From the sequence record MK250019.1: DNA of 64,000 nucleotides; one strand, written 5' to 3'. A program made the position numbers and the translations under genes. Every line of letters starts with the position of its first letter. The stretch's first letter is position 1. This document shows positions 9,549 through 36,934 of the stretch, in pieces. The notes below the pieces were generated by a model that was not told the DNA's origin, did not search any database, and was given only the letters and a program-made list of their open reading frames with translations.

Positions 9549-9577
9549 ATTATAGTCAAAAATATGTTAATTGTTTA
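9549..9577 (-). promoter_or_regulatory. class II promoter (TAAACA-N17-TATAAT) upstream of clpX
   Basis: Exact 17-nt spacer, with the same architecture at about 12 intergenic sites. Confidence 0.55.
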
Positions 9578-9619
9578 TTCTATAAATAAAATAATAAAAC
9601 TAATCTAATAATTAAATAT

Positions 9620-9817
9620 ATGAAAAATAATAAAAAGTCTCCTATTAAAAATAAAAATATAAAAGGAAAAATAGGTTCTGAAGGCGGTTATTATATTGAT
9701 AACTGTCCTGTTTTAATTCCTAAAGAAAATATTAAATTTTTTACTGCAATGCAAAAAGCATGTTCAGTCAATCCATATGGAAATTATGGAAATGCATATA
9801 ATAAGAAATTATTGTAA
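9620..9817 (+). CDS. small basic hypothetical protein (65 aa)
   Basis: ATG..TAA ORF preceded by TATAAATA (9581) and followed by a bidirectional terminator. Confidence 0.55.
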   Translation: MKNNKKSPIKNKNIKGKIGSEGGYYIDNCPVLIPKENIKFFTAMQKACSVNPYGNYGNAYNKKLL

Positions 9818-9818
9818 T

Positions 9819-9865
9819 AAAAAAGAAGATATAAGTTTTTCAAAATTAACTTATATCTTCTTTTT
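9819..9865. terminator. bidirectional intrinsic terminator between convergent genes
   Basis: AAAAAGAAGATATAAGTT / AACTTATATCTTCTTTTT inverted repeat. Confidence 0.75.
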
Positions 9866-9886
9866 ATTTTATATATTAATTTATAA

Positions 9887-10435
9887 TTAAAATTTTAAAC
9901 CATTCATCATTTCAAAAACCTTAATCTTATTATTAATTCCATAAATAATATTATCAATAGTTGAAATAGTATCTTTCATATATTTACAAAAATTATCTAA
10001 TAAATCTACTGATTCTTTTTCTGCTGACAACTGAGATTCTATTTGTAAATTAATAGCACTTTCATTTGTATAACGAATACCAGAAGATCCTGATTTCAAA
10101 GCTAAATATATACTTGATGCTTTTGTTTTATAATCTCTTGTTTGTTTACTTAAAATTTTTGCTGTTCCATAAAATAAATCTATTGCTTCTTGTCTTTTCA
10201 AATAAACTTCATTCATTAATCCATCTATAGATTTAAGATCTTTCATACGTTCATTAAGAGACTTTATAATATCAGTCCATTTATCCTGTAAATTTGTTAA
10301 TGAATTTTCCAAAGAATTCTGCTGTTGTGTATTTGTTTGTACAGATGTATTATTAACACCAGAATTATTTTGAATTGAATTATTATCTATATTATTTATT
10401 GTATTATTATCTTGCTGTGTATTTTCTTCATTCAT
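9887..10435 (-). CDS. helical protein, possibly a UvsY-like recombination mediator (182 aa)
   Basis: The C-terminus (LLDNFCKYMKDTISTIDNIIYGINNKIKVFEMMNG) has the pattern of T4-like UvsY C-termini. The N-terminus is N/Q low-complexity. Confidence 0.45.
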   Translation of the reverse strand: MNEENTQQDNNTINNIDNNSIQNNSGVNNTSVQTNTQQQNSLENSLTNLQDKWTDIIKSLNERMKDLKSIDGLMNEVYLKRQEAIDLFYGTAKILSKQTRDYKTKASSIYLALKSGSSGIRYTNESAINLQIESQLSAEKESVDLLDNFCKYMKDTISTIDNIIYGINNKIKVFEMMNGLKF

Positions 10436-10460
10436 ATAATTAAAGAACTATTCTTTATAC

Positions 10461-10489
10461 ATTATATATATAATAAAAAATAAAGTCTT
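10461..10489 (-). promoter_or_regulatory. class II promoter (AAGACT-N17-TATAAT)
   Basis: Exact 17-nt spacer; the -10 ends 26 nt upstream of ATG 10435. Confidence 0.65.
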
Positions 10490-10683
10490 AAATGAATAAT
10501 TTAATTAAAATCATATTTTAAAAATAATTTCAATCTCTAAAAGGAAATACCTTCTGAAAAAGAAAGAATNNNNNNNNNNNNNNNNNNNNNNNNNNNNNNN
10601 NNNNNNNNNNNNNNNNNNNNNNGTTAAATAAAATTTTTATTTAATTTTTAAATATCTATCATTACCTTAATATCTTAATATTA

Positions 10684-10712
10684 ATTATACTTGAGTTTTG
10701 TGAAAAAGTCTA
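10684..10712 (-). promoter_or_regulatory. class II promoter (TAGACT-N17-TATAAT) facing the N-gap at 10570-10622
   Basis: Exact 17-nt spacer. The -35 side is duplicated at about 10989, next to the second N-gap. Confidence 0.55.
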
Positions 10713-11070
10713 CATTTTTGTGAAAAAAGTTTAATAAAAATTAAAAATAATTTATAACTAATTAATAATCAATAATATTTATATGATAATTTATACAAAT
10801 TCTAAATAATATAATAAAAAATACTTACATTTCCGAAAGACTTACCTTACTAAATTCTATTAAATTAAATAAATAGAATAAAAATTAAATTAAAATTATA
10901 AATTTATAAATTAAATTTTTTCATATATTATATATAGATCTATCACAANNNNNNNNNNNNNNNNNNNNNNNNNNNNGGGCTTTTGAGAAAAAGTCTACAT
11001 TTTTGAGAAATATTTTTAATAAATTCTAAAAATAATTTATAAGTAATTGAAAATCAAATAATTTAGATAT

Positions 11071-11841
11071 ATGAGCATTAGCAAAAATAATACAAAACAA
11101 GTAAAAACAGGTGTAGTTGAATCAATAGATGATCCTACATGTTCTGGACGTGTGAAAGTGAGAGTTGCAGGATTACATGATAACATAGCAACAGAGAATT
11201 TACCATGGTGTAATTATGCTGGTTCTGGTATGTTTTCAGGATCAGGTGGTGGTTAGATTTCAATACCACGTGTAGGAACAAAAGTAAGAGTAAGATTTGC
11301 ATAGGATGATGTCAATGCTATGGAATGGTATGGTACAAATTCAATAGATAGAAAATTATCAGAAGAAATTGCTTCAGATTATGAAGGTTCTTAGGTTCTT
11401 CTTTATGATTCTGAATATGATTTGTCTATCAAGTTTCAACCTGGTTCTGGATTGGCATTTTATTATAAAGGTTCATATATGCAAATGACACCTGATAATA
11501 CTATAACTATTCATTATGGACCTGATGAAACAACAGGTGTTTAGATTTAGTTAACAGATGGAAAGGTTTATATATAGGCACCATAGCAGATTAATATAAC
11601 ATCTGGCAATGAAGTTAATATTGAAGGGAAGATTATAACTTTAAATGGAACATCTGCTGTTCGTATAAAAGGAACAACACCGAATACATGTGCTGTTAAT
11701 GCGACACAACTTATGACATTGTTATAGACAATGGCAACAAATATAGATACAAAATTAGGATAGTCAAAATCTGGTATTTGCGCTGCTACTGTTTCCGGTT
11801 CTAAAGAGAAAATAATGAATCAACATATCCTTTATATTTAA
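11071..11841 (+). CDS. baseplate central spike/hub, T4 gp5 N-terminal OB-fold-like (256 aa, 9 TAG)
   Basis: GVVESIDDPTCSGRVKVRVAGLHD...LPWC...G*ISIPRVGTKVRV followed by beta-helix-like repeats. Continuous with TAG readthrough to TAA at 11839. Confidence 0.85.
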
Positions 11842-14125: not shown

Positions 14126-14154
14126 AAAACTATTTCCTCTTTTTTTAATATAAT
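14126..14154 (+). promoter_or_regulatory. class II promoter (AAAACT-N17-TATAAT) upstream of sbcD, overlapping a terminator hairpin
   Basis: Exact 17-nt spacer, about 34 nt before ATG 14188. Confidence 0.55.
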
Positions 14155-14187: not shown

Positions 14188-15306
14188 ATGACAACAACAA
14201 AAAATATAATTTAGATTAAAGCAAGTAAATGTATTTTTCTTGCTGATATTCATTTAGGTGTAAGATCTGCATCAGAAGAATGGCAAGAAAATATTTCATC
14301 ATATTTTTATAATTGGTTTATTCCATATATAAAATCATTAGTGGAAAAAGATCCTACTTATTTTTTAGCAATTTTAGGTGATGTATATGATGATAGAAAA
14401 TCTATTGATATTAATGTAAATGATTTAGCAATAGATATATTTGAAATTTTAGGATCTATATTACCAGTTTATATTATAAACGGAAATCATGATCTATCTA
14501 AAAGAACAAACAAAGGAAATACATCATTAAGAAATTTAGATAATATTCCAAATGTTACAGTTATAAAAGAACCGACATTAATTAAGATTAAACCATCAAC
14601 TAAGATATTATCAAATATTATAGCAATACCATATTTGGGTTCACATGAAGAAGAAAATAAAGTATTACTTGAATATTCTGGTAAAGCAAATTATGCATGG
14701 ATGCATACAGATATTTCGCAAATGAAATTTGATAATGGTATGACTATTATCGGTGCAGTTGATTCAAAAATATTTAAAGGAAAAATATTATCAGGACATA
14801 TTCATAAACGTCAGGAATTAGGTAATGTTATTTATGTAGGTTCTCCATATCAGTTAAGAAGATCAGATATAGGAAATACAAAAGGAGTTTATACAGTAAA
14901 TTTTACTAATAACGAATTATTATTTGAAGAAAATAATTATAGTCCAATATTTCATAAAATAAAGGTAGAAGATTTTCTGAAACTAAGTGTTAAAGAAAGA
15001 GATGAATTTCTTAATAATAATTATAATGATATTCTTATAGAAGAATCTGATTTGAGAAAATATAAATCAGGAACAATATATGATATGGCAAATCTTTCTA
15101 ATGCAAAGAGAGTGCAAATTATTGTTAATAAATCTCATCATGATTTGGATAATATAGATAATGAAGAATATAAAGAATTATCTATTGAAGAACTTATCAA
15201 TGAATCAATTTCACAATTAGATGTTGATGATGAAACAAAAGGCAGATTAAAGAATATCAGTAGAGACAGATTAAAACAAGCAGAAAATGAATTAAATGAA
15301 GTTTAA
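14188..15306 (+). CDS. SbcD/Mre11 (gp47-like) recombination nuclease (372 aa, one TAG at codon 9)
   Basis: Metallophosphoesterase motifs ADIHLG, LGDVYD, GNHD and GHIH. The N-terminal DIH motif lies upstream of the track ORF. Confidence 0.92.
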
Positions 15307-15367
15307 TTATAAATAAATTATCACAAATTATTAAGTTTGTGTTAAAATTAATTAAACTAATTTTTAA

Positions 15368-15583
15368 ATGGATACTATAACATTTATAACAATATATTTT
15401 TTAATAGGATTAATAACATATATATACTTTATTACTTTAGTTAATAAAGCTGAATTAACTTTAGAATGTAAAATAAAGATATTCTTAATTTCAATTTTGG
15501 CAAGTCCATTAGTTATTCTATTAGAATTGTTTGTTTTAATTTTAAATAGAACACGTAATTTAAATGAAGATAGAGAAGATTGA
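15368..15583 (+). CDS. small membrane protein (71 aa)
   Basis: Two hydrophobic segments; overlaps the sbcC start. Confidence 0.6.
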   Translation: MDTITFITIYFLIGLITYIYFITLVNKAELTLECKIKIFLISILASPLVILLELFVLILNRTRNLNEDRED

Positions 15584-17240
15584 ATTTCGTAATTTATTTT
15601 CATATGGTGAATAGGTATAGGAAATAAATTATGATGATACGGGAAAACTTATACTTTTAAAAGGTTAGAGTGGGGCAGGTAAATCTGCAATTCTTTCATT
15701 ACCATGTTTATTATTATATGGAAAAATAGAAAAAGTTCCAAAAACTTCTATTGCAAATAGAATTAATAAAAATGGTTGGATGAGAGGAACAATTAAACAG
15801 GGGTAGCATACATATGTAATAGAAAGAAAGTTTTCTCCAAATGGTGTAACAGTATTTAAAGATAATGAAAATATTGAAAATTATGGAACAAAAGATGCAT
15901 AGTCATTTATTGATTCAGAAATTATAGATATTCCATAGGCAACATATTCAAACATGATTTCAATTTCAATGAAGTCATTTAAATCATTTCTTAAAATGTC
16001 ACCAGCAGATAGAAAACAGATTATAGACAGAGTTTTTGATTTGGAAATTATCAATGTTGTTTTTGAAAATCTTAAAAAAGATATGAGAGAATTAGGTTCT
16101 TCTATAAATGCAGATAATTCTACCATATTTTCTTTAAACCAAACTATATAGAATGCAAATAATGAATTAATTCAAATTCAGCAGAAAATATAGTCGAAAG
16201 AAAGTAAAGATAAGATTGAAGAAAATAATAATAAAATTTAGGAAGATAATCAGAAACTTAAAACATTAAATGATGGTTATAATCAATATGTATAGAAACA
16301 GCAAGAAATAACAAATCAATTTAATTCTATTAAAAATTAGCAGATTGAAAATTCTGTTAATATACGATAGATTCAAGAAAAGATTAATCTTTTTAAATAG
16401 GAAAAATGCCCTACATGCGGATGTTCTTTTTCATCTGAACAATTTAATGAATTAAGAGAAAATCTTAATAAGTTAATGCAAGATAAAATGAATATTGATA
16501 CATAGTTACAAGGTTAGATGAAAACACTTACAGATAACAGTAAAATTGTATCAGATTATCTTAATAAAATCGCGTCTGCTGTAACGAAAATCAATTAGAG
16601 TATAAATGCATTAAATTCAGAAAATCTTGTGATACAGGAGAAATTAAAGTCTAATTCTGAATATAAAGCTGTACAAAATATTATTGAAAAAACTACTGAT
16701 TAGTTAAATGTAATTAAAAAGAATATTGAAGATAAAAATCAATAGATGTTAGATTTACAGAATTTATCTTTAGTATATTCAATAGATGGTGTAAAACAAA
16801 AAGTTATTAATAATTATTTGCCTTTATTAAATAAAGAAATTGAGGATAATTTAATATAGTTGAATATTCCATATGGATTGGAATTTGACAGTAAATTTGA
16901 TCCGCATCTTAAAGATTTAGGTAATGAATTAGATCCAGTTACATTAAGTGATGGAGAAATGACAAGAGTTGATATAGTTGTTTTATGTAGTTTATTTAAA
17001 TTACTTAAAAGACGATACCCATCAATTAATACATTTACATTAGATGAAGTTATTTCTACATTGGACAATTCAAATTCAGGGGCAGTATTGGAATTTTTAA
17101 AGAATTTTGCAAAAGATAATAAATTGAATTGTTTTGTAGTATCACATACAGATTTATACTTGGAAAATTTTGATGAAATAATAGAAGTTGAAAAACATAA
17201 CGGATTTTCAAGATTTACTGTTATGTTAACATCACAATAA
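15564..17240 (+). CDS. SbcC/Rad50 (gp46-like) ATPase (558 aa, about 19 TAG)
   Basis: MKIEKIEFRNLFSYG, Walker A G*SGAGKS, Zn-hook CPTC, signature LSDGE, Walker B FTLDE and VVSH. Three track ORFs lie in one frame. Confidence 0.92.
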
Positions 17241-18493: not shown

Positions 18494-19432
18494 ATGGCAA
18501 AAATGAAGCAAAATCTTTCTGATATTTTTTCAGGAGTTAATAAAGAATTATTGAATTCTACAAAGGATAAGTTTAACAAATTGTCAAGTGTAGAAAAGAA
18601 GAAAGTACTTGATAATACAAATAAACTTATGGAGACATTCTGTGATATTTGTGGTGTTGAAAATAAGTATCATTTGACAGAGGAAATGTTTGATGATGCA
18701 AAAGAAAAGTGTAAGGAAACTACAAAAAATATCAAAGATTCTATTAAGGAATCAAAGGATAATCTTGCAGAAATTGCGCGTGATACATTGAATAAATTGG
18801 GTATTTCTGATGAGTTTATTAAGTCATGTAAGGTTGATAATGATAAGATTTATATTGATGTTCAAATGCCGGTAGATTCAGATATTAATGATATTGATTT
18901 GAATATTGATAATGATGGTGTATCATATGATCAGCAGGCAGAGGAACCACATAATGTACCAAAGTTTACTAGAAAGAATAAAGTAAAGAATAAGAAAGTT
19001 CGTCTTAGTAATAAGATTAAATTTAGAGATAATCATCCTGTTGTTGGGACAGAACAGATTGCAGATGATACTACACATATTCTTAATAGACTTAAGGCAG
19101 AAGCAAAAGAGAATGAAGTAAATGAACCAAAGATTAATTTGGATGATATTAAGCAGATTCTTATTGATAAGATTGAAGCTATTCTTGAAGATGAAAATAC
19201 ACATGCTTATACAGTTTATCCACGTGAAGGTGATGTACCAGCATCTGTACAGGTAACACTTGATGATGTATGTGGTTGCGTACGAGAACATCTTAATATT
19301 CTTACAGATGTTGCAGATGCAATTAAGGATAAGTACGGTTTTCCAGAAGTATATGTACATATGATGGAAAACGATGATACTTATAATGATAATACAGTTT
19401 CTGTAGGAATTATATGTATGTTGGAAGATTAA
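18494..19432 (+). CDS. hypothetical protein (312 aa)
   Basis: TAG-free ORF. TAGACA-N17-TATAAA at 18438-18466 precedes ATG 18494. Confidence 0.8.
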   Translation: MAKMKQNLSDIFSGVNKELLNSTKDKFNKLSSVEKKKVLDNTNKLMETFCDICGVENKYHLTEEMFDDAKEKCKETTKNIKDSIKESKDNLAEIARDTLNKLGISDEFIKSCKVDNDKIYIDVQMPVDSDINDIDLNIDNDGVSYDQQAEEPHNVPKFTRKNKVKNKKVRLSNKIKFRDNHPVVGTEQIADDTTHILNRLKAEAKENEVNEPKINLDDIKQILIDKIEAILEDENTHAYTVYPREGDVPASVQVTLDDVCGCVREHLNILTDVADAIKDKYGFPEVYVHMMENDDTYNDNTVSVGIICMLED

Positions 19433-19507: not shown

Positions 19508-19617
19508 TTTATGTTTTTGATTATAAATATAAAAAATAATTTTTATCTAAATCAAAATTATATGTAATTATTGATAAGATAAATAATAAAAAGAAAATTT
19601 ATTTAATAAAACATAAT

Positions 19618-22600
19618 ATGGGAAAAATTTCTATTGACTTATCTACTATAAAATCAGCAGGTATTTATACTATAGAAATCGATAACTCACAACGTGAGGT
19701 AACAAATCCTACTTCACTTCGTTTGTTACCTGGTTTTAATAATAAAGGTCCTTTCAACCGTCCAGTATTTATGCAGTATGAATCTGAACGTCAGAAGATC
19801 TTTGGAGATATTGATAGTAAGCTTGAGTAGAAAGGTTGTTTCTTTAATAGAATGGCATAGACAATGCTTAAGAACGGTCCTATATTGGCTCTTAATTTGT
19901 TAAAAGTTGATGATTCAATTGATGGTCCAGACCAGGTAAACTATGCTACAATGTCATTAGATTCATGTAAGCCAAATCCTAAAGTTACAAGCGCAGGAAA
20001 AACTTATGGTGAATATGATTATCAGGCAGCAACAATTAATAATAAGTTATATGGTTCAAAACAGGGTGATGTAATTCCTTATGTAGGTAAAACACCATAT
20101 GCAAGTTTGTTTGACCGTGCACGTTTCTGGATTCCTTCTAAGAATAATCTTCAGGCAGTTGCAGCTAACGGCTTATTGAGTAATGATCAGGGTTCATATG
20201 AACATACTAATTTACTTAATTTTGCAAATACAGGTACTGATGAAATTTCAATTCTTGTTTATAAACCAGAAAATGTTACAGGTTATAATGTAACTGCAAA
20301 AGAATGGTGGGGTGGTGATGAAAACATTCCTTATGGATGGATTCGTCCATCTGATTATATTTCAGATTACTTTATCCGCGTTGTTGCAATTAAAGGTAAT
20401 TGGACAAATTATCCAGTTCTTGCAAGTGATCCTATTTGGAGTAAGTATTTCGATAAGAATGGTGTAATTAAGAATAAAGTTTCATCATTATGTTCAGCAG
20501 AAGGCGTAACATTTATCGGTTCTTGGACAGGTTCAATTATTCCTGACTTTGTTGATAAACAAGGTAATTATATGTATATTGAATCAAAGGTAAATGCAAA
20601 TACAGAACGTACTGGTCTTTTGATGTCTGTAAATGAAGATGCTCTTCAGGTTATTTCATATGACAAGAATGGTGTTGATATTGAAACAGGTAATGAAAAC
20701 GGTACAGGTACATGGGTATTTGATTTTGATGGAAATAAACAAGCAGAATCAGAACTCGGTGAAAGTTCAATTAATGAATCTGGTTATCTTGTTGATATGG
20801 TTGGACATAATTTACAAAATGGTATTTATGCAGATAACTATTATTTAAATCTTGCCCATCCATTGTCAAATGAACAAAAACTTCCAGATGAGTCTGTTTT
20901 ATGTTATACATATTATTTCCAGAAAACACAGGCTAGTTGTACAAAAGATTTAAATGCATGGTGTATGTCATTTAATGGTAGAGATACATTATCAACAGAA
21001 GATGATGTAGTTCCTGCAGCAAAAATCAGAGTGCTTTATTGTAAAAATCAATCAATTGATACAAAGAAATTTGTAAAGGCATATTCAGTATATAATGCAG
21101 AAACAAATCAACCTGTTAAAGCAAATAATTCTAAATATGGTGCAAACTTCTATATTATGGAAGAATATAATGTTGATGAAAAGAAATCATCATTATCTGC
21201 AGAACTTTAGAACTGTTTAACAAAACCTCTTACTGATTTAACTAATGAATCTGGAAAGAAAACATTAGAGGTGATAACTACAAAACTTAAGGCATTACCT
21301 GTATATGCTCAACCTAATTTAAAGGTTTCATATAATATAAAGGATGTTGTATATAAACTTGATAATAAAAATAAGTTTACTACACAACAAGCAACAGTCG
21401 CAGATGTAATTTCAAAGGATGCAAAATATCTTTATATTAAAGAAGTACCTGTAACATCTGATACAAATGATAACTATGTATATGAGGATAAGACTATGTA
21501 TTATGGTACATACGCAATTCCTACGGTACCAGTTTCTAAAGCAACATCTGATACTGATAATACAAATGATAAGGTAGAAGTTAAGTTATTCTCTGTAATA
21601 GCTGGAACTAAAACAAATTCATATGCAATTATCCATGATTTGGGAACAATTACTACTACAACTGCAACTAATAAGTTAATTCCTGTTGAAATTACAAATT
21701 ATAAGGATTCAAAAGCAGATACAGGTACTAGTGCAAAAGCTCAAGGATTTACATTCAGCTATGGTGGAAATGATTACTTTGTCAGAGGTATCAGCGCAAT
21801 ACCACAAGCAGGAGGTATTTATACAGCTATGTATAAACTTGTTAATTCTGATACCCCAACTTATTTCGGTGTAAACTTCATGTCTTATAACTATATTACA
21901 GAACATGTAAGTGAAGTTATTACAAATGCATATAATGCATATTACTTTAATGGATATAAGAATACTTCAAGTGTTGCAGCAGCAGTTAATTTACAAACTA
22001 CTGATTTATATGATGAAGGTACATGTCCAGTAACAGATACAAATTTAAATTCATTCATTATTACTAATGAAACAGAAGCAAATAATATATCTGTAGGCGA
22101 TTATGTAAATAATATTTCATTCTATAATAATGTTGGTGAAGCAGAAAAATATAATTTGATTCCTGGTATTACACGAGTTATTACAAAGGTATTCGTTAAT
22201 GTTGATGCTCGTAATGAATTCTATTATAAGGGTTCTAAATATCATATTAATATTGGAGCACTTGGTGATGGTAATTTAATTGAAACAACTGCAGGTAAGA
22301 GAGGATTCTATTTGTTCACAACATTAGATCCTGTTTATATCAGTGATACTAATTATGTTGTTCGTCAGAAACCAATTACAGATGATAGTATTTCACATAA
22401 TTTGAAGTTTATCCCTCTTAAAGGTTTGCATATTTCAGCAAAACACCGTCCAGGATTTGATGAATATGGAAAACTTGATATTGAAGGTGGTATTGAAAAG
22501 ATTTACTCAATGCTTCAGGATGATGGAATTCATAGAGGTCTTTGTAATCCTAATATGGTTGATTACCGCTATATCGTTGACTCAATGTCATATGGTTTAA

Positions 22601-23469
22601 CAAATGAAATGGGTGGTAAAAAATATCTTTCTATTCTTGCAATGGATCGTATGAAAACAACCGCATTACTTAATCTTCCATCTAAGAGACAGTTTGAACT
22701 TTCAGTTGATCCTTGTTTCTGTGATACATATGATCAAGGTGTTTATACAAAACCTTCATTTGATACTAAATATATACCACAAGGTGGTAATACAGACATG
22801 TACTCAACTACAATGTTTAGCTTACCTACTGAAGATGATGGTTCTAAGTTTGCTGCTGCATTCTGGCCTCACTTGGTATATAATGTAAATGGACGTAAGA
22901 TAAATGTACCACCAGCAGCTGATGTTTGTGATGTTCTTATTCGCAAATTTAATGGTGGCGATCCTTATGTAATTGCAGCTAATAGAAATGGTATCATCAA
23001 AAACTCTGATGTTGTTGGTATTGAATTCAATGCAGATACAACAGATAGAGATTATCTTGAACCATTCGGTGTTAATACTATTATTCAGGAAGGTAATAAT
23101 ATCCTTATTTACGGCAATCAAACATGTTATCAGAATACCAAGAGTGACTTCAATAAGTTACATGTTCGTGAGAACCTTAATACTCTTGAAATTGCATGTG
23201 AAGATGTACTTAAGAGATATAACTTCTTATATAATACACCTGCTGTTCGTGCTTCAGTTGTTACTGCACTTACACCAATTCTTGAAACAATGAAATTGTC
23301 TAACGCAATTGAAAGTTATGAGATTATTTGTGATGAGTCAAACAACACACCGGACATCATAGCTGAAGATTATGGAATAGTCGACATCAGCGTGATAGTA
23401 TCTCACGGAATGGAACGTATTGTTCAAAGAATCACTTTGAATCGTAGAGATACATTACAAGACAGATAA
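19618..23469 (+). CDS. contractile tail sheath protein with large insertion domains (1283 aa, 3 TAG)
   Basis: N-terminal SAGIYTIEID...GFNNKGPFNRPV and C-terminal KLHVRENL...YNTPAVR...YEIICDESNNTPDII sheath motifs. Three track ORFs join in one frame. Confidence 0.92.
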
Positions 23470-23491
23470 TTTTTATAATAATATAATAATT

Positions 23492-23528: not shown

Positions 23529-23598
23529 ATTTTTAATATTTTTATATAACTTTTTCCATAATTTAGTATATAATATACAAATATTAATTTTTGTAAAT

Positions 23599-25416
23599 AT
23601 GAATGATGATTTAATAATACAAAAATTCATAACAGATAAAAATAAGATTAATTCACATTATAAACAAATTATAAATAAGAATCAAGAAATTAAAAATTAT
23701 TTAGATAATCGTTATAAAGATGGTAATGATGATTATTGTGAAACATTATATAGGATTCAACATCATATAGAAAAACATCCTGTATGTCCAAATTGTGGAA
23801 AATATGTTAGATATATAAATGGTACAGGATATAGAAAATCATGTTCAGTAAGTTGTAGTAAAAATTATATTAAAGAATTTAATAGTGATGAAATTACAGA
23901 TAATATAATTAAAAATGATTATTTAATAGATAATAAAATAAACACAAATAAATTACAAATAAAATATATTAAAGAACATGGATATGAAAATTATCTTTTA
24001 AATAGATATACAGATTCTACAAATTTTAGTGAAATAATTTATAGAATATGTAATAATGTAAATGAGAAACCACTGTGTAAAGAATGTGGTAAACCTACTA
24101 GATTCTTAAATTTAATAAGTGGTTATGATGATGTATGTTCAGATCGTTGTAGAAATATTTCGTTATTACCAGAAATAACAGATGATTATATTAAATCATT
24201 AGATAAGAAAGGAGGTTTATTTAAATATACATGGTATGGACATGATAAAGTAGAGCAATATTTAAAGAATAAATTTAAAGATGAATATAGATCGTATGAT
24301 GAAGCAATTTATATGATTTTAGAAAATAAGAAACACTTGCCAAAATGTCCTGTTTGCGGAAAAATACTTTTATTTAAAAAAGGTAGATCACAATTTAATA
24401 GTAGATTTATGAAATACTGTTCTATTGAATGTCAATCAATAGGAAGGCGAACAAAAACTATTAATAAGATTAAAAAATTAACAGGATTTAATATTGAATT
24501 AACAAATGATAATCAATATAAATTTATTAATGTTTGTGATATACATAAAGAATTTATTTTAACATATGATTAGTTTCATAACAGATGTTCATCAACAAGA
24601 TATATGTATAGTGTTTTATGTCCTATATGTAATCCTGAACGAAATCCTCAAACATCAATAGAAACTATTATGAAGGATATATTAGATAAGTTAAATATTG
24701 AATATATACAGCATGATAGGAAATTAATTGGTCCTAAAGAATTAGATTTTTATTTAAATAATTATAAAATAGCAATAGAATGTAACGGAACATATTGGCA
24801 TAGTTTATAGAAGAAAGATAAAGATTATCACATTAATAAATTTAATATATGTAGAGATAAAGGAATACAATTAATATCATTTTGGGAATATGATATTAAA
24901 CATAATGAAAGTTTTATTACTAATATTTTAAAAATATATTCAAATAATATTGAACATAATTATACAGATAATTTTAATTACGAAATTAAATGTATAGACA
25001 ATAAGGAATATAAAAATTTTATTAATTTATATAGTTTACATAGGAATGATAAAAGAGTAAATTTAAAATTGGGATTATATATAGAAAATAAGTTAATTTA
25101 TACATTTGGTTTAAATGAAAATAAAACAAATATTCATATATTAAAAATTGTTTCAAGATTTAATTATTACATTAAAGATGTAGTAAAATACATTATTGAC
25201 TATTTAGATACAGATAAAGACATTATTATTGATGTTAATAATGATATAGGTGATATTTATAATATAAAGAAATACTGTTGTTATTATAAAAATATAGATT
25301 CATATGAAGATTTTGTTATACGAAAAGATGATACAGCTTTAGCAAAAAAGAATGATAAATTTGTAGTAAGATGTTATAATTCAGGAATAACTGAATTTAA
25401 AGTAAAACTTTTGTGA
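23599..25416 (+). CDS. Hef-like / PD-(D/E)XK homing endonuclease with three zinc-ribbon repeats (605 aa, 2 TAG)
   Basis: Repeats of P.CxxCGK...F/Y...CS..C and the nuclease motif ELDFYL..YKIAIECNGTYWHS. A class II promoter lies at 23546-23574. Confidence 0.8.
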
Positions 25417-25459
25417 TTTAATTATCTATAATAATTAATAATAGATATAAGTTAGAAAT

Positions 25460-25804
25460 ATGGATAGAGAAAAGGAGTGTAAGGAAATTATATGCAGGTA
25501 TAGTACAGATATTAACAAGAGTATAAATCATGTTTTGGAAAATATATATAATGCAGGTTGGCATGATGGCAGACATGCAGAACGTGATAAGTGGAGTAAA
25601 TGTGAATATCTTATAATTGCACCTGATAAAATGGATAAAATTGCTAAGATATTGGATAATCCTCCTTGTAAGAATTGTGAGTTTAGTACAACAGAAAGAT
25701 TAACGGGATGTTTAGCTGTTCCACAGAAGTGTGAAAAATATCAAGAATATTCTTTATTATGTGAATTAATAAAATATTTTAAAACATGTTCTTATAAATC
25801 ATAA
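25460..25804 (+). CDS. hypothetical Cys-rich protein (114 aa)
   Basis: Intact ORF with AAAACT-N17-TATAAT at 25404-25432. Confidence 0.7.
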   Translation: MDREKECKEIICRYSTDINKSINHVLENIYNAGWHDGRHAERDKWSKCEYLIIAPDKMDKIAKILDNPPCKNCEFSTTERLTGCLAVPQKCEKYQEYSLLCELIKYFKTCSYKS

Positions 25805-25870
25805 GACTTTATTTAGGAATTTGATTATAATATGTAGATAAACTAAAAATATATACATAATAACTATCAA

Positions 25871-26026
25871 ATGAAAACAAAAATGAAACAGGTTAATAAG
25901 TTGGATAATTCTGTGAAGTTGCCATGGACTATCTATAAAGGATTTAGTGTAAATCCAAGTAAAAATGAAAATAATGCAGTTAACGAGAAGTTAAATGAAA
26001 ATAATATACCAGGTATATGGTATTAA
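25871..26026 (+). CDS. small hypothetical protein (51 aa)
   Basis: ATG..TAA ORF between an AAGACT-N17-TATAAT promoter (25803-25831) and a terminator (26032-26073). Confidence 0.6.
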   Translation: MKTKMKQVNKLDNSVKLPWTIYKGFSVNPSKNENNAVNEKLNENNIPGIWY

Positions 26027-26124: not shown

Positions 26125-27744
26125 ATGAGTTAGAACTTATATGAAACATTAATAAATGGAATATCATATGCTGTATAGAAATCTTTAAATGAGATGACAA
26201 GATTAGCAGTATAGAGAACAATTGATAAGAAATTATGGTTAAGTGTTGCATCAACATGTTCAAGAAATAAATCAACTGAAGCGAAGAATATTAGACCTAT
26301 TGGTTCAGATAAAGAAAATTTATTGAATAGATATGTTGCTGCTCTTATAATTATGCGAAAACCTTGTCCAGAAACAGAAGATGATATTGATACATTAAAG
26401 ACATTTAAATTAGTTGCTAAACGTTATTTACAATTAGGCGGAACATTATAGGAAATATAGGATTTATACAATAAAAACACAGGTAAAACAAGAATTATAC
26501 CACAAGGAACAGAAAAGAAACCTATATAGAAAAAAGAAGAATATACTGATAAATCAGTATCAACCGATAATATTGTTAAAAATGAACTAGCATAGAAAGA
26601 TTCATATGGTGGAATGGGATTATTTGACGATGATGACATATTTGGTGATGATACAGATGATATATCAAATTCAGAATTAACATAGAAGATTGTTGGTTTA
26701 GATATAAATGCAGATTTAACAACTGTTCTTATTCAACAATTAGGAAATAAACCAAGAGGTTGGAAATTTTATAAACATACAAATGATGAGTATGAGAAAT
26801 ATATGACGATAGATTGTTCGCCTGATTATGAATGGAGATATAAGAAATATGTAAAAGACGTAATGAAAGTAATCAAACAAAAGAATTGGACATGTTATTA
26901 GGTTACTACACCAACTAATTGGCAAATATCATCATTTAAAATAGAAAATCTTACAGATACTTTGGTTCGAGGTTAGATGCAAAAATATTTTGATTTTTAT
27001 AATAATAAGAAAGAACAAAACAAATAGAAATCGCCAGAAGAGATTACTAAAATGATTGATGAACGAATGCAGGTTTATAGATAGTTTGTTAAAGATAGAA
27101 AAAGGCAGGTTAATGCTATAAATAATGATTATGTAAAGAAATTGTTTGAAGAAGATGAATCTGTATATAGAGTTTATTTATCACCTGATACAGGTGTAAT
27201 GTTACTTGTTAAACGAGAAATGGAAGGAATGTCAGAAGATAGTTATAATTATATTTTAACATTTACAGGTAATGTAAATTATAATAATGATTTAAGAGAT
27301 AAGGATTATAATAAGAAATTAAAAGAAAGGGCAAAAGTACAAGCAAAGAGAAAATAGACATTTTTAAAGATGTTACATAAGTATTGTGGTTTAGGTCCAA
27401 GTTTTAGTTATACTGTATTATTTGATGATGACAATTATCCATATATGGTTGAAACATGTAGACTAGGTAATGCAGAAGGTGTATATAGAATATTATAGAA
27501 ACGTTTTTATAATCATGGTGAATATTTTTCATTATATGTACGGACACCTGAACATACAGAACCTGATTCTATTCATGAATTAGTTTAGAATAAAGAACAT
27601 TATCATGTTGAATTAGTAAGATTTATATATGGTGAAAATAAAGGTAAATATCCACAAGTTTTACCGGACGATAATTATTACATAATGTTTAAACCTACTG
27701 AATAGGGTAAAGCACGAATAGATTATATGATTAATAATAAGTAA
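26125..27744 (+). CDS. hypothetical, probably virion-associated protein (539 aa, about 16 TAG, first at codon 3)
   Basis: Continuous frame only with TAG readthrough. Upstream ATAAATAT, downstream terminator (27757-27796). Confidence 0.8.
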
Positions 27745-29258: not shown

Positions 29259-29353
29259 TTTAAATTTTATAGTCTGAATAATTTTATTATAAAGTTGTTC
29301 AGACTTTTTTATTTTTTATTATATAACAATATATAACGAAAAAATTATTATAC

Positions 29354-29950
29354 ATGGAAAAGAATTTTAATAATGAAATTGATGAGATGGATGATGTTTT
29401 GAATCCAGATGAAATAATTGATGATACTAGTTCAGATATTAATGAGGACGATATTGTCACAGATGAGGATGATAATGAATATGTATCAAAGGAGTATGCA
29501 GATAAACTTATTTCAGAATTGAAAACAGCAAAAGAAGATGCTGATACATGGAAGAATAAGTATATGTATGCATTATCTGATTTTGAAACATATAAGAGAA
29601 ATTCGCAGAAGGATAAGCAGAATATTTTGAAATATGGTAATGAAAAAGTAATTAAGGATATTCTACCTATTATCGATGATTTTGATAGAGCATTTATGCA
29701 TATGGATGCAGAAACAAAAGATGGTGTTATGCTTATCTATAAGAATTTTATTTCTGTATTAGAGAAACATGACGTTACTATTATTCCAGCAGAACCAGGT
29801 GATAAATTTAATGAGAATATTCATGAAGCAATTTCTGTGGTTCCTGCTATGGAAGATGAGCAGAAAGGTACAATTGCAGATTGTGTAACAAAGGGATATA
29901 TGTTACTTGATAAAGTTATCAGATATTCTAAAGTAATTGTATTTAATTAA
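29354..29950 (+). CDS. grpE: GrpE nucleotide exchange factor
   Basis: ALSDFETYKR...ILPIIDDFDRA...FNENIHEAI...KGYMLLDKVIRYSKV. Confidence 0.92.
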   Translation: MEKNFNNEIDEMDDVLNPDEIIDDTSSDINEDDIVTDEDDNEYVSKEYADKLISELKTAKEDADTWKNKYMYALSDFETYKRNSQKDKQNILKYGNEKVIKDILPIIDDFDRAFMHMDAETKDGVMLIYKNFISVLEKHDVTIIPAEPGDKFNENIHEAISVVPAMEDEQKGTIADCVTKGYMLLDKVIRYSKVIVFN

Positions 29951-30872: not shown

Positions 30873-30968
30873 TTTAAATTTTTTGAAAAAAAGTTTTCAA
30901 AATTACAGACTTTTGAAAAAAATTTAGATATATATAATATATAGTAAAATAAAATAAGTAAAGAGATT

Positions 30969-31173: not shown

Positions 31174-31176
31174 TAT

Positions 31177-31249: not shown

Positions 31250-31318
31250 CAATTTAATTTTTAAGTAAACTATTAATATAGTTCTTAATATAATTATAAG
31301 AATATTTTATATTAATAT

Positions 31319-32320
31319 ATGGAAATTAAATAGTTTACAGATGATGCATTAAAACATGTATTTGAAATATGTACATCAACAATGAATATATTGGAATTAT
31401 TAGGTTATGAACCATATAAAATAAGAGGATAGAAATGTAAAGAAATATTAAAAATATATGCTAATTAGATTGGTGTCAATATAGAAGATTATAAATCAAA
31501 TAATATAAAATTTAGGATATATAATGAATTACATCCTGTATGTAAAACATGTGGTAAGGGCTTAACATATTTTCAATATAAGCAAAAATAGGAATTTTGT
31601 TGTTCATCATGTGCAGCAACTTATAATAATAAACATAGGATATTATCAAAAAATATACTTAAAAAATTTTCATAGGAACAAAACATAGAAGAACTATAGT
31701 CTAGAAAACGAAATTATGTATTAAATACAGAGTTAATTAAACAAGGTAAAATCTTAAATGATAAAAATATTACATATAAAGAACATTATATAGATATAAC
31801 CAAACTTGGCGTACATATATGTCAAGTATGCGGAAATACATTTATACCTTCAATTACAGTAAAGGGAAATATATCTAAGTCTACTACATGTTCTGATATA
31901 TGTCATAAATAGTTAGTAAGTGAAAAATCAAAATAGGCACTTTAGAAACTTATTAATGACGGTCGGCATAAAGGCTGGATGTCTAGAAATATTACAAGTT
32001 ATCCAGAAAATTTTTGGATTAATGTATTAAATAATAATCATATAGTTTTTACATGTGAATTTAAAGTAAAAAAACGTTGTGGATATTATTATTTCTTGGA
32101 TTTTTTTATAGAGCATAATGGATATAAAATTGATTTAGAAATAGATGGACAACAACATAAGTATAGGAAAGAACATGATATTAAGAGAGATGAATATCTT
32201 ACATCATTAAATTATATCGTTTATAGGATTGAGTGGAATACTATAAATACGGAAAATGGAAAATTATTGATGAAAGAAAAAATTGATAATTTTTTAAATT
32301 GGTTTAATAATTTAGAGTAA
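31319..32320 (+). CDS. zinc-ribbon + DUF559/Vsr-like PD-(D/E)XK endonuclease inside the tRNA array (333 aa, about 9 TAG)
   Basis: CKTCGK...FCCSSCAA, CQVCG...CSDIC and YFLDF...LEIDGQQH...DIKRDEYL..L.Y.VYRIEW. A TAAACT-N17-TATAAT promoter lies at 31266. Confidence 0.82.
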
Positions 32321-32683: not shown

Positions 32684-32749
32684 CATTAATTATTTTGATA
32701 AAAAATAAGAGAAATATATAGACTTTTATTTGATTTCAACATATACATT

Positions 32750-33215
32750 ATGTTAATTGGATGAACAGTTAATAATTAATAATTAATAATAAAAATACTA
32801 TTAAAATGTGGGGTTTTGAGTGCCCATCATTTAAAGAGTTTCGAGAAGAAGACATTGTATGTAAAAGCATTAAGTTTCATTTAGCTGATGAAATGTAGTC
32901 AAGCGTGATGGTATCGATGTACATGGGTCCATCCGTATAACTTCGGGGAATCATAAGCATTAATCTTGGAGAGTACAGTTTTTAGTCTGAAATGACGAAT
33001 TTTCCTACTGGTTGCTCAATATGACATTAAGAGTCGGAGATAATTATTTGTAAGTTCCACAATTACAAGAGGAAAATGGAATTAAGTTGTCGGAATAACG
33101 TGATTATTCTATGTGTGAGTAAGAGAATGAAAGTAGCATTATATGTATGGTGTACGTATGCATATAGAAACAAAGCAAATAATAGCCCTTAGAGAATTTG
33201 CCGAGAAAAGGACAT
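32750..33215 (+). ncRNA. candidate large structured non-coding RNA
   Basis: GC-elevated tract lacking any convincing ORF, with several hairpins and a nested helix. A TAGACT-N17-TATACA promoter-like site lies just upstream (32719). Confidence 0.4.
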
Positions 33216-33233: not shown

Positions 33234-33392
33234 GCGGGTATAGCACAATGGTTAGTGTGTCGGTCTTCCATACAAGAATAAACTTGTAAAATTAAACTAT
33301 ATGCTAATAATAAATGTGGTATTATAAAATAAGAGTTCGAATCTCTTGCATATAGCAAACCGAAAATGTCGGTTCGATTCCGATTACCCGCT
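33234..33392 (+). tRNA. trnG: tRNA-Gly(TCC) interrupted by an approximately 87-nt intron after position 37
   Basis: 5' exon GCGGGTA..TCGGT-CTTCCA. The 3' exon A-ACCGA..GTCGG-TTCGATT-CCGAT-TACCCGC-T gives a canonical cloverleaf once 33271-33357 is removed. Confidence 0.88.
33297..33356 (+). ncRNA. D-armless tRNA-like element nested in the tRNA-Gly intron (TGT pseudo-anticodon)
   Basis: CTATATGC/GCATATAG acceptor-like stem, ATAATA-AATGTGG-TATTAT hairpin and AAGAG-TTCGAAT-CTCTT T-arm. Confidence 0.6.
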
Positions 33393-34241: not shown

Positions 34242-34345
34242 GTTGATATAGTTTAATGGGAAAACACCCAAATCCCAGGGATAAGAGATAATACTTTGAA
34301 ATAGGTATTAGAAGATTTTAGATGGTTCGATTCCATTTATCAACT
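34242..34345 (+). ncRNA. tRNA-like RNA with canonical acceptor/D/T arms and an aberrant, expanded anticodon region
   Basis: GTTGATA/TATCAAC acceptor, GTTT-AATGGGA-AAAC D-arm and GATGG-TTCGATT-CCATT T-arm. No canonical 5-bp/7-nt anticodon arm is present. Confidence 0.65.
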
Positions 34346-34835: not shown

Positions 34836-34862
34836 CTATTATTTTTTGATTGTTTATTTTTA

Positions 34863-34898: not shown

Positions 34899-34913
34899 AT
34901 TTAGGAAATAATG

Positions 34914-34923
34914 TGTATCTTTG
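34914..34923 (+). promoter_or_regulatory. Bacteroidota-type -7 promoter element (TGTATCTTTG)
   Basis: TAnnTTTG consensus about 28 nt upstream of ATG 34951. Confidence 0.72.
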
Positions 34924-34950
34924 AATTGTTATTAATAAAATAGTAATAAA

Positions 34951-35430
34951 ATGAAGAAATATAAAGTATATCAACTTCGTAGAGAAAACGAAAATATAAT
35001 TGATGATTATCATGAATCATATGATGCAAAAATGAAAGTTATTGCAGAATATGAGATTTCATCTGATAGAAATGATCCAGTTATTATATCAGAAGATATA
35101 TGACATATGTGTAATGTTCATTGTTGGGATCATACATGGTCTGATGGACAAGTTGTTAAACGAGATGATATTACATTAACACCTACATCTGATTTTGATG
35201 GATTTGTTAATAGTGATATTGTAGTTGAAACTGTAAATGGATTATATCTAGCAGAATCATGTGGATTTATGAAGGTGGATTCATTGAATTATGCTATGCA
35301 TAGAATTACTGTAAGATTCCCATTTATCTCTTATTATGATATAAGAAATAAAGAAGATTTTAATGAAGATTTACTTCGTGATATTCGTAATGAAATTCAG
35401 AAAGAATATCAGAAGAGAATTGAAGAGTAA
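34951..35430 (+). pseudogene. hypothetical gene with an in-frame TGA at 35101 (nonsense allele, sequencing error, or two coupled ORFs)
   Basis: ATG 34951 and track ORF 35107 are in the same frame, separated by TGA-CAT. Confidence 0.5.
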
Positions 35431-35468
35431 TAATAAACAAATATAAACAATTAAAAAGTAATATAATT

Positions 35469-36311
35469 ATGGCATGTAATAGTTTTTTAAATTCAGTTAT
35501 TAGAGGATTTGGTAGTCAGATTGGTAGAGATTCTGCTAAGGTTCTTACAAATTCTATGTATGGTAATGCACATGCAACACCATATAGAAATACTTCAAGT
35601 GAAATTGAAGTAGATTTGAATTCTCATTATGAGAAATTAACAGATGCGGATATTGCTTTATTAAATTCATCTAATATTAATGAATGGTGTAATACATATA
35701 GTTGCACATATCAGCGTGTTGGTAGTAATAGAATTAATTATATTAAATATTGTTTTATTTGGTTTGTATTAATTGGTTTAAATTTATTAGGTTTTATAAT
35801 TGCTTTATATAAAGGTTATAAACATTATAATCTAAAAAAGAAGATGAATCAAGAACAATATATAATTGAGCACCCATTTATTGAAGAATATAATGTAATT
35901 GATAATCGAACAAAAACAGGATTTAAAACGAATAAAAGAAAGAATGTAGAATATTATACATTAGATGTATATGAAAATTCAACAGAAGACTATATTAAGA
36001 AAGAAAAAAAGTTAGGTCTAATTTATTTTATTATTTCTATTTTTGCATTATCTGTATTTATTTTACCGTCAAATAGTGATGCTAATAATATAGATAATAT
36101 TAATACAACAGAACTTATAGATACAACCGTTGTCGATACAACAGTTGTTGATACATCAAAAGTTAATAATGATATTGAAGTAGAAAATTCTCAAAAAACG
36201 AATGTGAAATATAATGATAATTCTATTCGTTGTAAAGCTATTACACATAAAGGTACAAGATGTTCACGTAAAAATCAATATGATGGATATTGTTGGCAAC
36301 ATAGAAAATAA
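35469..36311 (+). CDS. membrane protein (2 TM regions) with C-terminal Cys motif CKAITHKGTRCSRK...CWQH
   Basis: Intact TAG-free ORF with hydrophobic segments and a C-terminal Zn-ribbon-like motif (DUF5763-like). Confidence 0.72.
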   Translation: MACNSFLNSVIRGFGSQIGRDSAKVLTNSMYGNAHATPYRNTSSEIEVDLNSHYEKLTDADIALLNSSNINEWCNTYSCTYQRVGSNRINYIKYCFIWFVLIGLNLLGFIIALYKGYKHYNLKKKMNQEQYIIEHPFIEEYNVIDNRTKTGFKTNKRKNVEYYTLDVYENSTEDYIKKEKKLGLIYFIISIFALSVFILPSNSDANNIDNINTTELIDTTVVDTTVVDTSKVNNDIEVENSQKTNVKYNDNSIRCKAITHKGTRCSRKNQYDGYCWQHRK

Positions 36312-36358
36312 TTTTTTGAAAATTTTTCCTAGAATATTTTTTTATTTGGAATAAAACA

Positions 36359-36368
36359 TGTATCTTTG
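36359..36368 (+). promoter_or_regulatory. Bacteroidota-type -7 promoter element (TGTATCTTTG)
   Basis: TAnnTTTG consensus about 47 nt upstream of ATG 36415. Confidence 0.75.
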
Positions 36369-36414
36369 TAATGTAAATAATAAACAAATAATAAACAATT
36401 AAAAAATAAAGATT

Positions 36415-36861
36415 ATGAATACAACAGTTAAGATTTCTCCAGCACAGGTTTTCCCAGTAGCTAACAAGATTCGTGCAGCAAAGCACATCTCTATGAAGGA
36501 AGCATACGCAGAAGCAAAGGCACAGCTTATTGCAGAAGCAGAGAATGCAGTGAAGACTGCAGAGGCAGTAGTTGAAACACCTACTAATGTAGTTGAGACA
36601 CCAGCTAATATGAAGTTGCATACAGAGTTGGTAGAGAAGATGAAGAACGGAAACGTTAAGTTTGTATTCTTCAATAACAAGGGTAAGAAGATTACAACTA
36701 CCGGTACTCTTGATATGTCAAAGGTTCCTACAAACCGTGATGTTCAGGGTCGTAAGACTGCAAAGGATGAGAATACTCAGGTATTCTATGATGTTCGACA
36801 TGGTGTATACCGCTCTTATCAGAAGGATAAGTTGGTAGAGATTATTTCAAAGAAGAAGTAA
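36415..36861 (+). CDS. SH3-fold (WYL_2/DUF2693-like) early protein
   Basis: MKNGNVKFVFFNNKGKKITTTGTL...QVFYDVRHGVYRSY pattern and highly biased codons. Confidence 0.7.
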   Translation: MNTTVKISPAQVFPVANKIRAAKHISMKEAYAEAKAQLIAEAENAVKTAEAVVETPTNVVETPANMKLHTELVEKMKNGNVKFVFFNNKGKKITTTGTLDMSKVPTNRDVQGRKTAKDENTQVFYDVRHGVYRSYQKDKLVEIISKKK

Positions 36862-36905
36862 AATGTCTTATATATGTTAAAGAATAATGGTGAGTTTCTT
36901 GTAAG

Positions 36906-36934
36906 TAGACAATTCACCATTATTCTTATATAAT
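36906..36934 (+). promoter_or_regulatory. class II promoter (TAGACA-N17-TATAAT) about 330 nt upstream of the lysin
   Basis: Exact 17-nt spacer with near-consensus hexamers. Confidence 0.62.

Follow-up and report, generated by a model that had tools for sequence, protein, structure and literature searches.

A phage-specific promoter-like class with an exact 17-nt spacer in Lak megaphages, probably read through a phage-encoded sigma factor

Introduction

Lak megaphages, which have not been cultured, occur widely in the guts of humans and animals, and no description of their gene regulation exists. The stretch of DNA analysed here, hereafter the window, comprises 64,000 nucleotides and corresponds to bases 1-64000 of Prevotella phage Lak-A2 (MK250019.1), with an SbcD match at identical coordinates. 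It carries genes for ClpX, SbcD, SbcC, a primase, a GrpE-like protein, a tail sheath, a baseplate hub, two endonucleases and clusters of tRNAs (Table 1) and, in front of several of them, a short element composed of two boxes at a fixed distance, WARACW-N17-TATAAT, whose copies we call M sites. An earlier reading made from the letters of the window alone (the sequence-only reading) had taken this element for a second promoter class, E. coli-like and foreign to Bacteroidota, which a phage-encoded sigma factor would read ahead of replication, recombination and chaperone genes. In this work we follow that proposal through the whole genome, through related phages and through the phage sigma factors, and we find it likely that the M sites are a real promoter class read through a sigma factor of the phage.

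This Lak megaphage, with a genome of 541 kb, genetic code 15 and Prevotella as its predicted host, comes from a paper where sigma factors are mentioned once and promoters never (PMC6784885). Our search of the literature found no account of Lak promoters, in line with the sequence-only reading, which knew of no description of this motif.

Results

A motif defined by two boxes and a rigid spacer

WARACW-N17-TATAAT occurs nine times in the window, against 1.52 +/- 1.31 occurrences in shuffled sequences, none of which (0/100) reaches nine. When the count is extended to the whole Lak-A2 genome (the window plus MK250019.1 64001-541299), 71 matches are found at N17, 57 of them intergenic, whereas the other spacers compared, 8 to 25, each give 5-17 matches, 0-5 of them intergenic. 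The excess at N17 has a Poisson P of ~3e-33, which is still ~1e-24 without the 11 copies borne by a repeat, and the reversed pattern is flat over spacers. Allowing one mismatch adds ~47 intergenic sites genome-wide, only at N17, and an iterated weight matrix finds 105-121 intergenic matches at spacer 17 vs 3-27 at spacers 14-20, where the small excess at spacers 15 and 19 is due to TATATA slippage. The spacer is fixed at exactly 17 nt, and lengths of 16 and 18 show no excess. Within the window, at a matrix score of at least 13, there are 14 matches at N17 vs 0-3 at other spacers from N13 to N21. Both the enrichment and the genome-wide fixed spacing predicted by the sequence-only reading are thus borne out, and a Lak genome holds ~100-120 copies of M.

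Every position listed in that reading carries the letters it reported, and its boxes and spacer were correct, but the real motif is longer, TARACWTTT...R-TATAA(T/A)-nnn-T-A. The refined logo reads T-A-R-A-C-W-T-T-T(T), then 14 spacer bases, then R-TATAA(T/A)-a-w-a-T-A. Its -35 core, A-(A/G)-A-C-(T/A)-T-T-T, has an invariant C (2.8 bits), TATAA(T/A) is at least 90% conserved at five positions, and the conserved T-A is placed 4-5 nt after the -10 hexamer. The two hexamers at 17 nt, lying upstream of genes and in their orientation, are what is expected of a sigma-70-type promoter, and TARACW agrees with TTGACA at 4/6 positions. The layout is accordingly of the E. coli type, as had been proposed, and distinct from the Bacteroidota TAnnTTTG class.

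The position of the sites with respect to genes is equally regular. A large majority of the intergenic matches (111/121, or 92%; binomial P ~1e-22) are co-oriented with the next gene, at a median distance of 33 nt from the ATG (interquartile range 25-100), and M sites are also found upstream of tRNA-Glu and tRNA-Ala, at 22-26 nt from their 5' ends. All the M sites of the window fall within 9.5-37 kb, and the block from 37 to 64 kb, where genes are giant and TAG-rich, has none.

Table 1. Promoter sites, repeat cassettes and genes of Lak-A2 referred to in the text (MK250019.1 numbering; positions up to 64000 lie in the window).
Feature	Position	Strand	Remarks
M promoter TAAACA-N17-TATAAT	9549..9577	-	exact; score 20.6; intergenic; upstream of ClpX
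M promoter AAGACT-N17-TATAAT	10461..10489	-	exact; score 20.4; upstream of 9887-10435
M promoter, consensus	10684..10712	-	score 26.2 (best in window); inside ~150-nt repeat cassette
Second cassette copy	10977..11005	-	-35 TAGACT at 10993-10998 and part of spacer visible; -10 inside N gap
M promoter AAAACT-N17-TATAAT	14126..14154	+	exact; upstream of sbcD
M promoter TAAACT-N17-TATAAC	15353..15381	+	score 15.9; between sbcD and sbcC; extra to the earlier list
M promoter AAAACT-N17-TATAAA	17285..17313	+	score 17.3; 4 nt before primase ATG
M promoter TAGACA-N17-TATAAA	18438..18466	+	score 19.8; overlaps primase 3' end; upstream of 18494-19432
M promoter ATAACT-N17-TATAAT	23546..23574	+	weak -35; score 13.1; upstream of homing endonuclease
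M promoter AAAACT-N17-TATAAT	25404..25432	+	exact; score 16.9; upstream of 25460-25804
M promoter AAGACT-N17-TATAAT	25803..25831	+	exact; score 18.3; upstream of 25871-26026, 26125-27744
M promoter TAAACT-N17-TATAAT	31266..31294	+	exact; upstream of HNH endonuclease and tRNA Pro/Arg/Arg genes
M promoter TAGACT-N17-TATACA	32719..32747	+	score 17.4; after tRNA-Arg; upstream of 44-aa ORF 32806-32940 and further tRNAs
M promoter TAGACA-N17-TATAAT	36906..36934	+	score 20.7; then 37267-37866
Host-type motif	7217	-	
Host-type motif	12018, 27880, 30296, 34916, 36361		
Cassette copies, window	10640-10790, 10977-11060		
Cassette copies, rest of genome	100639, 100879, 172708, 223574, 328306-328736, 453887, 454153		
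ClpX	7300-9507	-	E 6e-156
Baseplate hub	11071-11841	+	
SbcD	14188-15306	+	
SbcC	15564-17240		
Primase, phrog_47	17273/17318-18448		ATG 17318
Tail sheath	19618-23469		
Homing endonuclease	23599-25416		
GrpE-like protein	29354-29950		
HNH endonuclease	31319-32320		
RpoD/RpoS-like sigma, 338 aa	132224-133240		regions 1.2, 2, 3, 4
CTA tRNAs (TAG suppressors)	144866-144938, 145771-145845		first behind two M sites
T4 gp55-like late sigma	153610-154095		
tRNA, anticodon TTA	211337-211409		
ECF-type sigma, 316 aa	219155-220105		SigW 3e-21

Membership was settled site by site. Two proposed members of the class found no support, namely the 16-nt variant before grpE at 29300 (score 8.3) and the site at 30906 (score 3.4). 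An exact match at 23459..23487(+), with a score of 13.7, was also rejected as probably due to chance: it is found where the sheath gene ends, a terminator hairpin follows it, and it is deleted in the related locus L015 and in phage Lak-B1. The stretch of ~300 nt that follows the 36906 site (36935-37266) has no plus-strand open reading frame (ORF) of at least 20 aa and no Rfam match, and it may be a non-coding RNA or a long leader.

Conservation in related phages, and comparison with a candidate host

In phage Lak-B1, from baboon, whose SbcD is 91% identical, 37 of 97 forward-strand matches fall at N17, vs ~6 for each other spacer. At orthologous Lak loci, the sites before sbcD, sbcC, 18494 and 23599 keep both boxes while their flanks have gathered substitutions and indels. 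For example, the Lak-B1 counterpart of the 14126 site keeps TAAACT...TATAAT within flanks that are 75% identical, and at the 15353 position the same phage shows TAAACA-N17-TATAAT, with a better -10, despite adjoining indels. The 18438 site is kept in L015, L021 and Lak-B1, and the 23546 site, apart from one change in its spacer, in L015 and Lak-B1. The loci L015-L020 (primase 85% identical) hold only one exact match in 21 kb, which reflects -10 variants and a different gene content and not a loss of the class. A relative known from a 47-kb fragment (G002) has three N16 and one N17 among 11 matches, a small sample.

The sequence of one candidate host-lineage genome, Leyella (Prevotella) stercorea An906, shows no excess at the same spacer (10 of 100 matches at N17). 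This genome carries the clustered regularly interspaced short palindromic repeat (CRISPR) that has been reported to target Lak (PMC6784885). The phage itself has a second and strongly conserved motif of ~45 nt, tttttatTTGaaa...atgTATCTTTGtattgt, which is of the Bacteroidota TAnnTTTG type (tgTATCTTTG). This promoter type was reportedly defined by Bayley et al. in 2000. Genome-wide, ~84 co-oriented copies of the host-type motif precede genes, which are poor in TAG codons, and the tgTATCTTTGtattgt class sits at other genes than the M class. In M sites, TATAAT is followed by A/T and not by TTTG, so that the -7 element of Bacteroidota is absent. Since the host-type motif is separate and Leyella has no N17 excess, we consider the M motif a second, phage-specific class.

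Genes behind the M sites

The targets in the window, as named by PHROG and NCBIfam matches, are ClpX, a 182-aa protein, SbcD, SbcC, the primase, two homing endonucleases, unassigned genes and tRNA clusters. The sequence-only reading placed the motif before replication, recombination and chaperone genes, which holds for SbcD, SbcC, the primase and ClpX and fails for the grpE site at 29300; the GrpE-like gene is still counted among the M-preceded genes of the window in the argument from gene content. The label "uvsY-like" for the gene behind 10461(-) is not supported by family searches either, which gave no match for this 182-aa gene.

Outside the window we sampled 30 genes behind strong sites, and PHROGs named a function for 14 of them, 12 of which belong to DNA, RNA or nucleotide metabolism. 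The sample includes three DNA polymerase pieces, two helicases (one DnaB-like), a clamp loader, an NAD-dependent ligase, NrdD, an NrdG-like activase and nicotinamide phosphoribosyltransferase, together with a homing endonuclease, a transposase and a portal protein. The class is more than a replication regulon, since it also has tRNAs, homing endonucleases, a transposase and one portal gene among its targets. Homology to DNA polymerase is divided among three separate genes, 122977-124524, 345475-346287 and 346643-347617, each with its own M promoter, and a homing endonuclease gene (343723-345378) adjoins two of them.

The tRNA targets deserve a separate mention, because Lak-A2 uses code 15, in which TAG encodes Gln. 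On the minus strand, M sites at 146324 and 146227 precede a TAG-free ORF, a tRNA with anticodon CTA follows 15 nt further, and no terminator-like site was seen between the ORF and that tRNA. The M class thus probably drives a TAG-suppressor tRNA, as co-transcription from this arrangement would imply. The number of TAG per 1000 codons is 3.2 in genes with the host-type motif only, 6.1 in genes with M only and 9.6 in genes with none of the three motifs considered, values that indirectly fit an intermediate temporal class for M. A "middle" class would agree with the kinds of genes found behind M sites, with their intermediate TAG load and with the way promoters are arranged at the sigma genes.

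A repeat cassette and the N gaps

Eleven of the 71 exact sites lie in a repeat cassette of ~150 nt. Most copies are paired, at 240-285 nt from each other, and most sit at the borders of divergent genes. The cassettes hold the best-scoring promoters and ~45 conserved transcribed bases, and have no match in Rfam. In most copies, the window copy not among them, the transcribed bases start with a 14-codon mini-ORF. Cassette copies are found at the borders of gene modules, and each of the two N gaps of the window adjoins one of them.

Both gaps (10570-10622 and 10949-10976) are in a 600-nt divergent intergenic region between 9887-10435(-) and 11071-11841(+), where a 77-nt direct repeat (10696-10772 / 10981-11057) marks two cassette copies. 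No ORF of at least 60 aa touches the gaps under either code, so the reading frame is not at issue. The sites 10461(-) and 10684(-) are intact, at 81 nt and 62 nt from the first gap. A transcript from 10684(-) would enter that gap after ~62 nt, for which reason its target cannot be traced, and the second cassette copy is not scorable because its -10 is inside the other gap.

Other features of the window

The window has a GC content of 23-33%, with a summary figure of 26%. ORFs of at least 100 aa cover 62% of it under table 11 and 88% with TAG as a sense codon, which joins fragments into frames of up to 2,891-2,893 aa. The giant frames are 46575-55250, 41992-46551 and 55330-59943, with sizes given as ~2,891, 1,519 and 1,537 aa, and TAG density is uneven among the genes of the window, from 0 to 47 per gene. 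A crAss-like identity of the phage was considered and rejected given the tail sheath, the baseplate hub and an SbcD protein 99.7% identical to that of Prevotella phages Lak-A1/A2; the phage is a Lak megaphage, a myovirus.

The ClpX protein (735 aa) matched the ClpX model in two stretches around an insert of ~300 aa, which gives a PhoH-like/ATPase match and may be an inserted domain or an intein. Sheath homology is confined to the last ~300 of 1,283 aa, after a long N-terminal part without a family match, and TATAAATA is present at 19522, 88 nt upstream of the sheath gene. Rfam detected only tRNAs in the window. Two of its hits are long tRNA-like genes, 33234-33392 (159 nt) and 34242-34345 (104 nt), which ARAGORN did not report and which may be intron-containing tRNAs.

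Three sigma factors of the phage

The sequence-only reading advised looking for phage sigma genes elsewhere in the genome, and Lak-A2 encodes three proteins of the sigma-70 family: one RpoD/RpoS-like, one of the extracytoplasmic function (ECF) type and one similar to the late sigma gp55 of T4. The ECF sigma gene is second in an operon headed by a host-type promoter. Upstream of it, at 14 nt from the ATG, an M site with a score of 21.3 falls within the 3' end of the preceding gene. An M site at this same distance, with a score of 21-22, is found in Lak-A2, Lak-B1 and seven IMG/VR loci, which amount to three sequence versions in all. In the G002 relative, whose ECF sigma is 59% identical, the M site before the gene scores 16.7. 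The compared lineages also retain the host-type promoter that heads the operon, and the region-2 and region-4 helices of the sigma are identical across them, the 59% relative included. A more remote homologue (L040, 26% identical) has ACAACT-N17-TATAAT ~95 nt upstream, below the score threshold and not counted. These relatives were retrieved with an alignment query, as a single-sequence query found only itself. Family searches on the neighbours of the ECF sigma gene gave no anti-sigma and assigned them no other role.

No M or host-type site is present upstream of the RpoD-like gene in Lak-A2 or Lak-B1; it is preceded instead by a terminator and a conserved gATAAATAt motif. The residues of this protein at positions that contact the -35 and -12 bases differ from those of E. 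coli sigma-70 (R584/E585/R588 to E/T/N; Q437/T440 to R/M) and also from those of both host RpoD paralogues. Its gene has four in-frame TAG codons in Lak-A2 and none in Lak-B1.

Regarding the third sigma, ATAAATA shows a peak 30-39 nt before the ATG of genes without M or host-type motif (41 of 75 occurrences in that bin), which could make it a late class of the T4 kind, used by the gp55-like protein. TATAAATA was tried and rejected as a proven late class, with an intergenic total of 69 vs 115 in the reversed-pattern control.

Discussion

A sigma factor of the phage as the probable reader

These observations make it likely that the M sites form a real promoter class, read through a sigma factor encoded by the phage. 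Host core RNA polymerase carrying a phage sigma, and not the Prevotella housekeeping sigma, would then recognize them. Which of the phage sigmas would do so is a harder question, and we tentatively favour the ECF sigma over the RpoD-like one, at close to an even chance, because an M site before its own ATG and a host-type promoter upstream accompany it in all the Lak lineages that we compared. ECF sigmas that regulate themselves usually have a promoter of their own class immediately before the gene, and ECF promoters such as those of sigma-E and sigma-W combine an "AAC" -35 box with a rigid spacer. M sites share the AAC-type -35, the strict spacer and, as far as position tells, the copy directly upstream of the sigma gene.

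From these pieces a cascade can be proposed. Host sigma-A would at the outset read the tgTATCTTTGtattgt promoters before TAG-poor genes, as suggested by their motif, position and TAG load. One such host-type promoter, by the gene arrangement, would lead to expression of the ECF sigma, which could then read the M promoters, its own among them, in a positive autoregulation. The M regulon would supply the enzymes for replication, recombination and nucleotide metabolism, ClpX, the GrpE-like protein and tRNAs, probably including the TAG suppressor if it is co-transcribed as the positions indicate. Finally, the gp55-like sigma might perhaps serve late genes through ATAAATA-type motifs. The boldest form of this scheme, possible but rather doubtful, is a full three-tier sigma cascade, in which the ECF sigma, made from a host-type promoter, would give the host core an E. 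coli-like specificity foreign to the host and, through its ~100 promoters, turn on replication together with the TAG-suppressor tRNA.

Several facts weigh against the ECF sigma as reader or against this order of events. A TATAAT -10 is typical of group 1/2 sigmas, while ECF -10 elements are usually CGT-type, and M sites have TATAA(T/A), with G in 27% one base upstream, in place of a CGT-type box. Moreover, ~100 promoters is a large number for an ECF regulon, and this size together with the TATAAT -10 favours the RpoD-like sigma. The TAG codons of the RpoD-like gene, which could be held against that protein as a mark of late expression, are a weak argument because the Lak-B1 copy has none. The portal gene among the M targets means that the class is not cleanly "pre-late", and an M-like match before the gp55-like gene may be fortuitous, since in Lak-A2 as in Lak-B1 it overlaps with a terminator hairpin.

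The RNA data, which are assembled contigs from animal-gut and wastewater metatranscriptomes, do contain this region. In a pig metatranscriptome, a contig of 2,991 nt begins ~9 nt after the -10 of the 14126 site (~14163) and runs to 17152, which is 88 nt short of the sbcC stop codon, and the next one begins (17334) 21 nt after the -10 of the 17285 site. The contig breaks at 14143/14165 and 17152/17334 thus coincide with two M sites, in line with the prediction, although we do not count them as start mapping, since contigs cannot prove starts and the pig strain diverges from the window at 14143; this too takes weight from our interpretation.

Alternative readers and alternative signals

The same evidence can be read with the RpoD/RpoS-like sigma as the factor that recognizes the M class and the ECF sigma as merely one of its target genes. 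We regard this as unlikely, if a serious option: the perfect TATAAT, the GAC at hexamer positions 3-5 and the 17-nt spacer make up the sigma-70 consensus geometry, the protein keeps core-binding and melting residues (DLIQxGNIGLMKA, Y430, W433), and a large regulon suits a housekeeping-like sigma, yet the residues expected to touch the -35 and -12 are precisely the ones replaced. The gene, moreover, lacks the M or host-type promoter that the ECF operon has, what precedes it suggests late expression, and its Lak-A2 copy would have to be translated through TAG codons, while the suppressor tRNA seems to lie behind M promoters.

The reader would come from the host if sigma-A or another host sigma recognized the -10 while a phage activator bound the TARACWTTT box, as in the sigma appropriation by MotA/AsiA of T4. 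The phage has T4-like traits in SbcCD (counterparts of gp46/47), in the clamp loader and in the gp55-like sigma, and the upstream box does lie at a fixed distance from a TAnnnT-type -10. This appropriation is nevertheless improbable, since the -10 of M lacks the TTTG extension that the host-type promoters of the phage carry without exception, the candidate host genome has no N17 excess, and two phage sigma factors would have no promoters to read; homologues of MotA and AsiA were not seen, though no search aimed at either was made. Very improbable, in turn, is the idea that M is no promoter at all and is instead a dispersed repeat or another signal (a mobile element end, or a replication or packaging signal) resembling -35/-10 boxes. 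The ~11 of 71 exact copies that travel in the ~150-nt cassette would agree with it, but the other 60 share boxes and spacing only, with no common spacer sequence, and the enrichment persists without the cassettes. The 92% co-orientation, with sites 25-40 nt from a start codon or at tRNA 5' ends, also speaks against a mere repeat. A promoter class read through a phage sigma thus stays as the preferred explanation.

Implications

A clean class of ~100 sites offers a first transcription map of these phages, one that splits ~590 mostly hypothetical genes into temporal groups. As the suppressor tRNA lies behind M sites, the promoter class becomes linked to the TAG-recoding switch and, if the three-tier cascade is real, one promoter class would time the change of genetic code of the phage. 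It also illustrates a way for a phage to get around the unusual promoter grammar of its host, and pairs of phage sigma and promoter could serve as orthogonal expression parts in Bacteroidota.

Comparison with known systems

Among the T4-type phages, the promoter-early stem-loop (PeSL) cassettes are multi-copy intergenic elements of ~100-150 nt that carry a consensus promoter at module borders. The Lak cassettes are likewise multi-copy, intergenic and placed at module borders, each with a consensus promoter, but there is no sequence relation, and only 11 of ~100 M promoters are in cassettes. T4 middle promoters resemble the M class in the genes they serve (replication, nucleotide metabolism and tRNAs) and in having a box at a fixed distance from a TAnnnT -10. 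They differ in the sequence and position of that box, which in T4 is TGCTT at -30 within the MotA box (a/t)(a/t)(a/t)TGCTTtA, and their mechanism needs an activator and a co-activator. T4 late promoters, read by gp55, have TATAAATA at -10 and need no -35, whereas the M class requires an upstream box at a fixed distance. The promoters of bacterial ECF sigmas (sigma-E, GGAACTT-N16-TCTGA; sigma-W, TGAAAC-N16-CGTA) share with M an AC in the -35 with T's after it, a spacer of strict length and a copy of the promoter before the sigma gene, and they depart from it in the -10, which in Lak is TATAAT and not CGT-type, in the ~100 promoters of Lak and in the anti-sigma partner, which we did not find among the neighbours of the Lak gene.

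The closest parallels come from phages with sigma factors of their own. In SPO1, the host sigma-A serves early genes, gp28 middle genes and gp33/34 late genes. As we propose for Lak, the host sigma acts early and a phage sigma then redirects the core to a distinct -35/-10 class before replication genes. The SPO1 middle boxes are, in contrast, AGGAGA and TTTnTTT, and the Firmicute host of that phage uses TTGACA/TATAAT, whereas in Lak, known from sequence alone, it is the phage class that is E. coli-like and the host class that has the Bacteroidota -33/-7 layout (for the SPO1-type cascade see PMC13401047). Phages phiEco32 and Salmonella phage 7-11 encode a distant member of the sigma-70 family, and their promoters were likewise found as an over-represented intergenic motif (PMC4331800). 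As would be the case in Lak, the phage sigma takes over the host core polymerase, for middle and late promoters, although each of these is just one 9-bp element, tAATGTAtA, and lacks a -35 box (PMC4331800), unlike the two boxes and rigid 17-nt spacer of Lak. It is well known that phages can run sigma cascades with promoter classes of their own, and what makes the Lak class distinctive is its size, its exact spacing, its possible link to the code switch and its E. coli-like grammar in a phage of Bacteroidota.

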